DNA from: Trichosphaerium sp. ATCC 40318
Taxonomy: Eukaryota; Protista; Tubulinea
Direction: 5' to 3'
Length of the DNA stretch: 64,000 nt
NCBI GenBank assembly: GCA_038496445.1
Contig: JALMLS010000523.1
Coordinates: forward strand, 49,110-113,109
Of the stretch, positions 37,508-42,194 are shown in pieces. Position numbers and translations under genes: made by a program. The notes below the pieces were generated by a model, which was not told the DNA's origin, made no database searches, and saw only the letters and a list, made by a program, of their open reading frames with translations. Position 1 is the first letter of the stretch. Every line of letters starts with the position of its first letter.

Positions 37508-38128
37508 TTTAAGGGTGTAGTTGTTTGTATTGTTGTTGTTAAAGAACAATGCTAACTTAAGTGAGATATTATCTATTATTATGTTTGTGATTCCTCAATA
37601 ACTTACTATTAACTTCTACGCCCATTGAGGTACCCAAAGAAGTGAATGGAATCATAAATGAAACAAGTTAAGTATCGGGGAAATAGTTAATACCGGCCAA
37701 ACTGCAAAAAACACGTGCACCGGAGGTGACGCCTTTGGGTAGGCACTTAGGGACCTAATGCCAAGAAACATTACCGATTGAACTTAAACCACTAGCTCAT
37801 TTTACCGGCTATGGCAATTCGTAACCGGTTGGGTTGAAATGACGCTTGTCGGTTTCATTTGTAAGCCACGGACACACGCTGTTTTTTCATCCAAACTGCT
37901 CTCCTACGCTTTAAAATAACAAAGTCCGACATGTTAAAGTGACAAACTGTTGCGATTGAAATAATCAACTCACTCGGATGCTTGAAGTACTCGAAATCTC
38001 TCAAATTGTTTCTTGAGGTTGGTTTACAACCCTTCCAATTATGTATGTTTATTATAAGATACAAGCGTTTGTTTTTTTTTTTGTTTTTAAAGGCTATTAA
38101 AAAGATACAATGAAAGAGAGGTCTGCAT

Positions 38129-41100
38129 TTAAAAAACAAAGTTAATTTTATCATAGCTATTCTTCTTTTTGTTAAAGCAAGCCCTAATATGATCTTCATT
38201 AAATTTTTTCATCTCCCTCAATACCAACCAATGATCAAATGGATCAAGTAGATTAGCTACAGCAGCAAAATGGCCTGGTTTAAGCTTTCCTCTCTTACCT
38301 ATTTGAAGAAATCAGAAAAAATCAAAAAAGAGGGGTTATAGTTCGATTGTGTCTAGTGATTTTCATCACGTGGGTTTTTCTTTCAAAATAAAATTTTGTC
38401 GTATTTTGTTCCCAAGTAAAACACCAACACAAGATAGCCAAAATCGAGAATATAATCCAAAAAATGTAAAAAAGAAATAACGTACCACACCAAGCTACTA
38501 GTACGTCCTTATGGTGCTCTCCATCATCTGGTATACGAAGCTTAATAAACATAACCTTATTATCATCTAACAAATCCTTTACATCACTTGACGATCGGCC
38601 ATAATCATCAACGACAATCTTACCTTTTGAAAAAGGTAAGCAAGAAGTTTTTCACTTAAAAGTATCATAAAACGTCAACTGAACTCTTACCATCAGAGTT
38701 ATATACTAAGGTTATCCACCCCCGTTCACTCTCATTTGTGAATGCCTTATTATTCAGCTCTTTGACATTTTCACTATCTAGTATCTCCTTAAACTCAGGT
38801 GGAACATCTCCAATATTAGATAAATCTCCATTTTCTCTAGACAATCGCTTCTCTGAGCTATGTGAATTTTTTGAGTTACGCTTCTGCTGATGTAGCCTAA
38901 AAAAATAACTACGTCAGCCCAAGAAAAAAAAAAAAGAATCACAAGCAACAAAACGGAGAAGAGACGATAAGATAACACAGAAAAGAAAAAAAAGAGAAAG
39001 CAACAATTCTTAACAACTTACCCTTTTCTATCTTCTTTAATAATGTCAGGCAGTCTCGACTCAAACTTGGAAAACAAAGACAATAATGCACTTATACCTA
39101 TCATAAAATATAAGTATACATCGCACATAAAAAACAAAGCTAAAACAAAAACAGTACCAGGTCTATTAGCAGGGTTTTGATCCAAACACATCTTAATAAT
39201 TTTAGCCCAATACTGCGATGATTTCAAGTTCGCATCTGGCATCTCTGATATGTCCATACTTCCCAACGTAACGAGTCCATTGTAACCATCAATATTGCAA
39301 CAAACTAATCTCAAAATCAGTACAACAACAATAAAAGACAATCCGTACCTAACTCCCAACAAATTAGACCAAAGCTCCAAACTAATAACAGAATTAGCAC
39401 AACGAATAAAAACAACACGTTTTTCTCTTACCATTTGCTTTGGGCGTTAATGAGTCCCTCCTATATAGCTCTGGTGCAGTATATACCAAAGTATCTTCAT
39501 TAGGGAAACCAAAATCATATAGTCTAACAGTTGCATGCTCGTCGGAAACCTAAAACAAACACCACAATCAGCAAACGCACATACAACATGAACCCTCAAC
39601 AACACGTACGATTATTGTCCTCGAATTCAAATTTTCTGGTACAAGTACCGGACTTTGACTGTGCAAGTAGGAAAGTGCTATAACAACATAAGACACTCGA
39701 ACTTAATATGAACTAGAAAAAAACCAGAAAATACAAATGTTTGTTGCTATACCGTACCTTGTAATACACCATGCGCTATTCTAACCTTTTGACTGGTATT
39801 TACAACGTTTTTTACAGAATAATCATACAAGGTGCCCCTAGCGTTCTATTAGGAACAAAGAAACAAAAAAAACTCTGTTAGCTTTTAATATCCACGTACT
39901 GTCTTCCTACAGGCCACACGATACACATATTTACAGGATCTGCAACAACACCCAACGGCTTTAATAAAGCAGGGTGATCCAAGTTGCTACCACAGTATTA
40001 GAACATACACGTGTACTTTTTTTTTGAGATAACTTACCATACTACAGCAGCTTGTTTGCAGAAGGTAGCAAACTCCTTAAACCTCGGAGAGAACCGTTTG
40101 TATATAACCTTTCGGCTTTGCTTAAAAATCCCTCTGAATATGGAACTCTCATCCGTTCTAAGAGGGAAAAACATAAGCAATTCGAAATTTGATCTTTCAA
40201 AAAAAAAAAAAGGTTCGTACTTTTGGAGAAGGAAAACTTCTTCCAAATCATCATAACTTAAGATAGAGCCTTTCAAAGGAGCTAGCATTCTCCATTCATC
40301 ATTACTTTTGAGTATAAGCTTAATAGCAGTATCGTCCTTAAAGCCTAAAACACGAGTCAAAAAAGAAAAACACCAATTAAATATGCGTCTGAACGTTATT
40401 GGAATATCTTAGCGTACCTATAGATTTTAGCTCTACTGGGCTTCGTATAGAACGAACTGAAAGTAAATCGTAATAACCAGCTACAAAAAAGAAGTAAGAA
40501 TAAATGGAATACTTCAAGAGTTGAAGGTAATACCTTGTATTATAGTTTCTGTGTACGATTCTAACCCCAACTCTTTCAGCCAACTTCCAATAACGTCAAC
40601 TGGTTGATTTTGCAAGTATTTAGGCATCACAGGGACATTAGCTCTTCTAGGACTGCAACAAATATCAGCAAACAAAGCAGTAAAAAAAAGTCGGACAAGC
40701 TTACTAAAATCGGTACCCAAATCAAAACTCCTTTTTTTGGGGATTCAACAAAAAGAAAAAGATCAATAAAATTAATGGCTTTTTTAGCATGAAAAATACT
40801 TGCCTGGATAACTCGGGAGCAATGTACTCTAAAAATTCAATAAGTGAGTCCAAAGACTCATCTTCTAGCTGATTATGGCCAGCACTACTAACAATCTGGC
40901 ACTTCCACATATTTATGAATTTTGAATCCAATTTCTACATCAAAAATCAGACACAGGCATACCAAAGTGCGTAACAGATTTTAATATGAAAAGAATATAC
41001 ATACCTTGGCACTTTTAACAGAGATATATTCATCATCCTCACCATGAATAATAAAAACTGGACAAACAATCTTTTCTGCTTTTTTCACATTCTCGCAATA

Positions 41101-42194
41101 ATCATTTGTCATAAGAGCAGCTAAAGAAGTCTTACGACGTTCTTTTCTAAAACAAAAAAAATAAGCCTACGCTCTACAAAAATAGACACAAAAAAAAAAT
41201 GGACAAGAATACTCGAGCTTTGAAAAAAAAAATATCTTACCCTCCTGTAAGAAAAGTATTCCATGATGCAATAGGGGACTCTAATACTAATCCTCCCAAT
41301 GTACGATATTTTCTCTTTAAGTCGTCCTCTGGAATTACACCTTTCTGCTAAGACAGTTAATTTTTGTGTTCTCAAAAAAACAGAAAATTTTCTTGACTTG
41401 TCCACAAGAAAAAATCTAATACCTTAAACCCTCTAAAACCTCGTAGGCTTGCTGGTGATTTATGTTTTGGCACGCTTGATACCTCTGCTGCCAAATTAAC
41501 TACTGCTGCTGTAGCAAGAGATCGTCCCATACTAAAAAGAGAGTAATGAGTGAGTAATTGCCTATTTGATCGATAAAACGCATAAAAAAAAAAGAAATGA
41601 CGAGGTTTGTATCACGACATAGAATAGCGCGTTCCGTACACTATTATTCTATGAGGTTTTACCCCTTTTACTTTAATAAGCCAATCGTATGCAGCTGTTA
41701 TCTCCTCGTATGCTCTTTTCTCTGTAATTGGGCCATATTTGTTTAGGCCGTAGCCACTAAAATCAAACGACAACACGTTAACCTTTATAATAGTCAGAAG
41801 TTGTTTGATTCGCGCTCGTAGTTGCTTTTTAAGCGTGTTGTTGCCTTTTAAGAAGAGGGCTATTTTCTGCACCAAAAACACTCATGTGACGCAATTACGT
41901 ACCTTTAACGCGGCGTTGAGCAATTTACGAAAGTTGTGAGTGTGGCTCATGTCTTGTTCAGGTCCACCAACATACAGAAACCAAAAGTTACCACTGCGAT
42001 TGAAAAACCATTAATTGTTATCGATAATGGTAGTATTTCACGCACACTGATTTGGTTTCGTCATTAAAATGTTCTAAATACGAAGCAGGTATGCGAATAT
42101 TGCCCTCTCCTTCTAACCAAAAGAATCCTAGTAACGATTCTTCTGAATAACCAACAGGAGGTGGAGACAGCACTTTTCCTACACCACTGCCCAT
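38129..42194 (-). CDS. Multidomain protein: ABHD17-like hydrolase + SAM + pseudokinase + ADF-H (coactosin-like)
   Basis: MGSG start; FDFSGYG, GRSLA, LVLESP, IIHGEDDE, AGHN (hydrolase); VIGSWLKELGLESYTETI (SAM); YLHSQSPVLVPENLNSRT..LYDFG..YTAPE..CLDQNPANRP (kinase fold); GWITLVYNSDGKIVV..LDDNKVMFIKLRI..VLVAWCG (ADF-H). Confidence 0.7.

Follow-up and report, generated by a model that had tools for sequence, protein, structure and literature searches.

A Trichosphaerium gene predicted to join a lipid-anchored serine hydrolase to a SAM domain, a TKL-type pseudokinase and a probable ADF-H tail

Knowledge of how lipid anchors are taken off proteins comes chiefly from a few single-domain animal enzymes, whose targeting to membrane sites is still being studied. 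A locus of Trichosphaerium sp. ATCC 40318 raises the question of whether a hydrolase of this general kind can be one part of a larger, multidomain chain. The locus lies on the minus strand, between positions 42194 and 38129 of a 64,000-nucleotide (nt) stretch of contig JALMLS010000523.1, which was analysed at its full length and is called the window hereafter. The original prediction made from this DNA described a single chain of exons encoding an ABHD17-like hydrolase, a SAM domain, a pseudokinase and a coactosin-like actin-depolymerising factor homology (ADF-H) domain. On balance, we favour a single gene combining a myristoyl-anchored triad hydrolase, a SAM domain, a TKL-derived pseudokinase and a probable ADF-H domain, acting through the mechanism proposed below. 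The finding as a whole is deduced from predicted domain architecture.

The coding chain opens with the ATG at 42194 and closes with the TAA at 38131-38129; its 21 exons, spread over three frames, contain no internal stop. In the model retained here (model C, 38129..42194, minus strand; 2418 coding nt and 805 amino acids (aa), based on frames and splice sites), exons 1 to 7 lie at 42194-42046, 41993-41903, 41782-41640, 41531-41423, 41344-41241, 41146-41005 and 40934-40804, exons 8 to 14 at 40652-40534, 40480-40418, 40344-40221, 40157-40038, 39986-39900, 39837-39758 and 39677-39610, and exons 15 to 21 at 39549-39432, 39381-39349, 39304-39158, 39097-39022, 38896-38691, 38623-38486 and 38298-38129, all on the minus strand. 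The window is AT-rich eukaryotic DNA (38% G+C) with short introns; those of this gene measure 44-187 nt and are of the GT-AG type in all but one case (40803-40653), with donors that read chiefly GTAAG or GTACG and with T-rich tracts preceding the acceptors. Each exon boundary was set by coordinates and phase. Queries for the Pfam, PDB, protein-collection, protein-atlas and structure searches were single exons (pieces of 20-75 aa) or homologous proteins, and the joined translation was scored solely against profiles built from retrieved proteins. Exon-wise Pfam searches returned weak but rightly placed matches, as expected for pieces of this length. The best explanation of the chain, and one that agrees with the single exon chain first proposed, is an intact gene encoding a predicted cytosolic protein of 805 aa (or 802 aa). 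An AATAAA at 38048-38053 on the minus strand, about 76 nt past the stop codon, may be a polyadenylation signal, and no signal of this type was found after the TAA at 39018. Scans for bacterial promoters and terminators, for Rfam families and for tandem repeats gave nothing relevant. GTACG begins nine of the 20 introns, and the sole GC donor reads GCAAGT.

The 5' end allows more than one model, with two tandem in-frame versions of the strand, oxyanion loop and first helix lying between exon 1 and the hydrolase body. The first version (41993-41903, minus strand), which begins FWFLYVGGPEQDM, is exon 2 of model C; the second (41783..41866, minus strand; KIALFLKGNN...) falls within an intron in model C but is part of an exon in model B. 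Exon 1 has a compatible donor for each, at 42047 or 42045. Model C, made of the first version followed by an internal acceptor at 41782, scored 186.0 bits against the hydrolase family profile and reproduced the family spacing exactly, compared with 165.5 bits for model B (second version only, 802 aa). Model A, which retains both versions (833 aa, 169.8 bits), was rejected, as it requires a 36-nt intron, splits the profile match and scores lower. Model C therefore appears to be the best gene model. The exon chain first described is confirmed overall, with a corrected 5' end: 41993-41903 is followed by the acceptor at 41782 and not by the whole of 41866-41640. The two oxyanion versions may be mutually exclusive splice choices, or they may be the product of an ancient exon duplication, one copy of which has become intronic.

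The predicted alpha/beta serine hydrolase (aa 13-295; 40637..42158, minus strand; exons 1-7 and the start of exon 8) matched the family profile at 186 bits. Ser132 in GRSLA (41521-41519), Asp237 in HGEDD (41034-41032) and His266 in AGHN (40877-40875), the three residues named in the original prediction and all encoded on the minus strand, fell on the triad columns of an alignment with ten homologues, in which the Asp is invariant, the His near-invariant and the serine of GxSxG kept in eight of the ten. The remaining two, P0021 (GKNLG) and P0060 (GAGFG), lack the nucleophile serine and are pseudo-hydrolases. The family therefore includes dead enzymes and, judged by its complete triad, the present gene is not one of them. 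Exon 6 matched Pfam Hydrolase_4 with an E value of 0.031, and the homologues exceed the Pfam cut-offs. By sequence, the nearest structures were a dienelactone-hydrolase-type enzyme, Hydrolase_4 proteins and the ABH domain of a MARTX toxin. An AlphaFold2 (AF2) model of the homologue P0058 adopted an alpha/beta-hydrolase topology at a mediocre predicted local distance difference test score (pLDDT 59.9), and a Foldseek search with it returned esterases, cutinases, lipases, monoglyceride lipase, lysophospholipases and thioesterases, APT1/2 included. In every family member the nucleophile helix is followed by a basic insertion of about 35-40 aa that is rich in Ser/Thr (here aa 145-185; 41282..41482, minus strand; 10 Lys/Arg versus 3 Asp/Glu), the equivalent of which has a pLDDT below 50 in the P0058 model. 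Further on, between the strand that follows the insertion and a 'CEN' motif, the family alignment outlines a candidate loop whose centre is basic and whose outer residues are aromatic or hydrophobic; it, too, has low confidence in the P0058 model.

A myristoylation-type start had also been proposed, and the sequence bears this out. The start codon and the codons that follow (42174..42194, minus strand) encode MGSGVGK, which matches the N-myristoylation pattern at G2, S3, G6 and K7, where position 6 is small and uncharged and position 7 is not proline. All ten homologues begin with MG, and nine of them have Ser or Thr at position 6. No cysteine was found within the first 30 residues of the model. 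N-terminal lipid anchoring of the predicted protein is thus plausible. Taken together, the MG start and the basic insertion resemble a myristoyl-plus-basic membrane switch.

The hydrolase is joined in frame to the SAM domain by a GC-AG intron of 151 nt (40653..40803, minus strand; CAG/GCAAGT ... TTGTTGCAG/T), which is 45% T on the coding strand. The spliced product gave one continuous match of 248.5 bits to a hydrolase+SAM profile. The only in-frame GT-AG alternative (40799-40700; 235.7 bits) was rejected, because its score is 13 bits lower and it would add 17 hydrophobic residues. Exon 8 alone (39 aa) matched Pfam SAM_1 below the cut-off (E 0.0096), and a family SAM profile scored 52 bits on the model (aa 291-366; 40298..40651, minus strand; exons 8-10), compared with 26.5 and 15.6 bits on two raw open frames. 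The SAM domains of the homologues exceed the Pfam cut-offs, with E values down to 3e-14.

These homologues came from an exhaustive search with the 75-aa exon 3, which returned 52 proteins with a best identity of 37%, so that the organism's own protein is absent from the collection searched. Several of them have a SAM domain directly after the hydrolase, near residues 305-370, and a word search seeded with one of these gave more. In ten homologues the hydrolase and the SAM domain have the same order and spacing, and six of the ten are open reading frames (ORFs) from transcriptome assemblies. The named members are all Amoebozoa: Filamoeba sp. ATCC50430 (P0016), Planoprotostelium fungivorum (PRP81584.1, P0047), Soliformovum irregulare (P0058 and P0060), Cavostelium apophysatum (P0059) and Thecamoeba quadrilineata (P0061); environmental members complete the set. 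A tblastn search with the homologues matched exons 1, 3, 6, 7, 8 and 9 of the window collinearly, and in the multiple alignment the model and the family differ by a gap of at most one residue across the hydrolase-SAM junction. Because of this shared spacing and of the continuous profile match, both the fusion and the GC-AG intron are well supported. The in-frame intron, the SAM domain and the reading as one gene rather than two, all put forward originally, are therefore retained, the last in view of transcriptome homologues in which one ORF encodes both hydrolase and SAM, separated by a linker of equal length. By these comparisons, hydrolase-SAM is a conserved amoebozoan family, and its C-terminal ends have been swapped in evolution: PP2C follows in Planoprotostelium P0047, a pseudokinase both in Thecamoeba and in the present gene, and the remaining members end in coiled-coil-type or unassigned tails.

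Exons 11-18 encode a predicted TKL-type pseudokinase (aa 395-628; 39042..40150, minus strand). It was matched at 104.8 bits, without large gaps, by a profile built from 66 TKL kinases akin to the Thecamoeba domain, and at 38.9 bits by the Thecamoeba kinase domain itself; taken singly, the kinase exons had no Pfam match and nothing significant in the PDB. As the TKL match spans aa 395-628, it validates exons 11-18, including a 33-nt exon that encodes VWSFGLICWEL. In the alignment HRDLKxxN reads PENLNSRT, with PEN in the HRD position (39639-39631) and Thr in place of the catalytic-loop Asn; the Gly-rich loop has no glycine (KTDESSIF) and the helix-C Glu is Gln, while the beta3 lysine (Lys412, 40099-40097), DFG (39516-39508) and APE are all kept. 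Since the Gly loop, the helix-C Glu, the HRD Asp and the catalytic-loop Asn are not kept, the domain is classed as a pseudokinase, just as first described. The Thecamoeba domain is also dead (HGRLSSKN, and LGG in place of DFG); loss of kinase activity may therefore be old, with the domain kept for a non-catalytic role. A SAM domain beside a TKL- or TK-type kinase, possibly a dead scaffold, is known from the SplA/SplB-type TKLs of Dictyostelium, from EphA10/EphB6 and from the KSR-CNK system, and 'splB-like' kinases occur among the relatives of the Thecamoeba domain. Unlike the present protein, these systems are not known to carry a hydrolase or an ADF-H domain, and in the Eph receptors the SAM domain follows the kinase instead of preceding it. 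More than 1000 first-look candidates for pieces of TKL-type kinases were counted in the genome, where the family is large.

Beyond the kinase, a basic, Ser-rich linker that matched no family (aa 636-674; 38779..38895, minus strand) leads to a probable, divergent ADF-H domain of the coactosin/Abp1 class (aa 675-797; 38156..38778, minus strand; exons 19-21). When compared by hhalign with an alignment of twelve coactosin-size proteins (whose PDB check was topped by coactosin-like protein at 2e-34), the tail aligned end to end over 123 columns with a P value of 5e-4 and a probability of 31%, and its score of 27.7 exceeded the maximum of 21.6 among 200 shuffles. It was also compared with 461 open frames from ADF-H loci of the same genome, and its nine best matches were all real ADF-H frames, of the coactosin/Abp1/drebrin class. 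The core pattern W-x4-Y, G, LR, K-x-V-x3-W is kept, including Trp748 of the ADF-H core (38492-38490) and Lys742 (38510-38508), which is invariant in the coactosin alignment. The tail thus resembles the ADF-H domains of coactosin, Abp1 and drebrin in the length and order of its elements and in their core motifs (the last extending to K-x-V-x3-W-x-G); it differs from coactosin in not keeping the residues of the N-terminal helix, in the reduced length of the long helix behind the Trp and in being the end of an 805-aa protein, whereas free coactosin has about 145 aa. An ADF-H fold in the tail is likely on this evidence; actin binding by it is predicted with less assurance.

The junction between kinase and tail has consensus splice sites (donor AGG/GTAAGT and a T-rich-AG acceptor) with fitting phases. 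The exon-19 frame (38913-38668) contains no Met at all, and upstream of mid-domain the ADF-H exons offer no in-frame ATG; for this reason the domain cannot be a separate gene and would be spliced to the kinase exons. Retention of intron 18 would meet the TAA at 39020-39018 at once and yield a 636-aa hydrolase-SAM-pseudokinase without ADF-H, a simple possible route to both protein forms. A six-frame comparison of the genome with Cofilin_ADF gave 52 matches, of which 35 exceed the cut-off, so this family is also large there.

How might such a protein work? The original prediction pictured a membrane-anchored depalmitoylase under pseudokinase control and tethered to cortical actin, a picture that is partly supported: the lipid-anchor start and the dead kinase agree with it, and depalmitoylase activity, control by the pseudokinase and actin binding stand as predictions. 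In the animal ABHD17 proteins, described as depalmitoylases (PMC4755737), the catalytic residue is Ser190, and the acylated N-helix as well as a hydrophobic loop need to enter the membrane; in ABHD17A, F222, Y229 and F231 belong to this membrane-inserting loop beside the pocket (bioRxiv 10.1101/2024.05.14.594217). By analogy with that acylated helix and loop, the myristoyl group and the family's own basic loop beside the active site would hold the hydrolase against the inner face of a membrane with its pocket toward the bilayer, where it would strip acyl chains from membrane-bound proteins or lipids. The SAM domain would self-associate or bind partners, the dead kinase would serve as a non-enzymatic binding or switch module, and the ADF-H end would tie the complex to actin filaments beneath the membrane. 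ABHD17A/B/C and the present protein are alike in having a small alpha/beta hydrolase, some 300 aa long, with a Ser-Asp-His triad, in a lipidated N-terminus (here predicted) and in a loop beside the pocket (here a candidate). They differ in that ABHD17 carries a palmitoylated Cys cluster, in place of which a myristoylated Gly is predicted here, and in that ABHD17 is a single-domain protein, whereas this one has an extra basic insertion of about 35 aa as well as SAM, pseudokinase and ADF-H domains. Three motifs, 'F-x-P-x-E-x-x-Y' near the N-terminus, 'F-E-N-x-K-K-I' and 'HG-x-x-D-E', may resemble segments of human ABHD17.

Several observations weigh against parts of this reading. The most probable competing view concerns the substrate and is compatible with the architecture: the hydrolase may act on membrane lipids, as a phospholipase A1 or lysophospholipase similar to MARTX ABH, and not on S-acylated proteins, which we regard as a possibility short of an even chance. 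No ABHD17-named protein appeared among the matches of any search, nor any ABHD17 structure among the PDB matches; the neighbours of the hydrolase in structure searches were all generic esterases, lipases and thioesterases, NCBIfam gave generic hydrolase matches far under the cut-offs, and a protein-atlas search with a homologous hydrolase gave generic Hydrolase_4 clusters only. The best solved-structure match of exon 3 was the Vibrio MARTX ABH domain 6imp (E 9e-4), which also matched the family profile. This toxin module (6imp, 6ii2) shares the strand-helix-strand core around the nucleophile; it differs in being bacterial, in having no SAM, kinase or ADF-H domain and in that the likeness covers about 75 residues, and it is a distant relative of the Hydrolase_4 group instead of a family member. 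Against a lipid substrate stand the possible motif likenesses to human ABHD17 and the combination of a lipid anchor with a loop beside the pocket, which is the ABHD17 arrangement. Rather unlikely, by comparison, is that the C-terminal 130 residues form an unrelated small domain or a lineage-specific tail with no link to actin, the rest of the architecture being right. The Pfam Cofilin_ADF match is confined to exon 20 and lies below the cut-off (17.2 bits against 22.4, E 0.0043), coactosin hidden Markov models scored the tail at 7-12 bits, hardly more than the best of 2000 shuffles, and only nine of 30 coactosin-invariant positions are identical, the Trp and Lys742 among them. Exons 19 and 21, searched singly against the PDB, matched no ADF-H structure, an atlas search with exon 20 gave no usable match, and the closest relative, P0061, has no ADF-H domain. 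The hhalign result above all shuffles, the own-genome matches and the kept core and invariant Lys argue the other way, and the match is collinear over three exons in three frames. The coactosin-like domain of the original prediction stands above chance by hhalign, below the cut-off by Pfam and at a marginal score by the coactosin models.

We consider it very unlikely that two or three adjacent genes were wrongly joined, with the hydrolase ending at the TGA near 40722 and the ATG near 40628 opening a separate SAM-kinase gene, or with an end at the TAA at 39020-39018 and ADF-H exons that are part of something else. That ATG, the non-canonical GC donor needed at the first junction and the stop met immediately on read-through of the intron-18 donor would suit such a split. 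It is opposed by the single ORF for hydrolase and SAM in all ten homologues, six of them from assembled mRNAs, with a linker within one residue, by the absence of a start codon in the ADF-H exons, and by gaps of 151 and 125 nt that are T-rich, have consensus splice ends and are too short for a terminator plus promoter. Least probable of all is a decaying lineage-specific fusion in which hydrolase and kinase are inactive and the ADF-H domain is a remnant. The nucleophile motif GxSxA in place of GxSxG, an oxyanion segment that is unusual in both versions and oddly duplicated, the dead kinase and the very divergent ADF-H domain would fit decay, as would the loss of the nucleophile serine in P0021 and P0060; no close orthologue, and no full-gene orthologue, was found in the databases searched. 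Yet some 2.4 kb of coding sequence over 21 exons shows no stop or frameshift, the splice sites are intact and the triad is complete, and pseudokinases are usually functional scaffolds.

The remaining question is how far the architecture is new. The best match of the model overall, at 197 bits, was the Thecamoeba protein P0061 (EukProt EP01103_P014816; a 927-aa ORF from a transcriptome), in two collinear stretches covering hydrolase+SAM and kinase. It shares the MG start, the hydrolase family, the SAM position and a dead TKL-type kinase, which matches Pfam PK_Tyr_Ser-Thr at 1.3e-31. Its overall identity is low, it has lost the DFG kept here, and its tail (aa 675-927) is low-complexity and disordered, without ADF-H. 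The amoebozoan family more widely shares MG, a conserved N-terminal motif, the basic insertion and a SAM domain directly after the hydrolase; its tails differ from that of the present gene, and ADF-H was absent from the 11 hydrolase-SAM relatives. Relatives of the Thecamoeba kinase domain were ordinary TKLs, none with a hydrolase or ADF-H, and two hydrolase paralogues in the same genome (contigs C28 and C69) have no SAM, kinase or ADF-H downstream. Searches of the own genome with exons 3, 17 and 20 matched the gene itself only. No other protein combining the four domains came up in the searches made, and the literature searches yielded no description of this architecture. The unfamiliarity first remarked on therefore holds for the four domains together, but the first three already occur in Thecamoeba. 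Three of the four parts apparently belong to an undescribed but conserved amoebozoan family, and the ADF-H addition is, so far, the only part that appears unique.

In this family the hydrolase sits in one chain with presumed targeting and partner-binding parts. Because it is built into the same chain, its domain partners hint at what the enzyme may be coupled to: phosphatase- or kinase-type signalling and, here, actin. This offers a testable handle on deacylation at the amoeba cell cortex. A broader scenario, which we put forward as speculative and doubtful, is an amoebozoan family of myristoyl-anchored SAM deacylases with interchangeable ends (PP2C, pseudokinase, coiled coil, or pseudokinase plus ADF-H), in which the present enzyme would be tied to cortical actin and its oxyanion versions (exon 2 versus 41866-41783) would perhaps be spliced into catalytically different isoforms. 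The pseudokinase lineage conserved between Thecamoeba and the present gene would have to act in a non-catalytic role.

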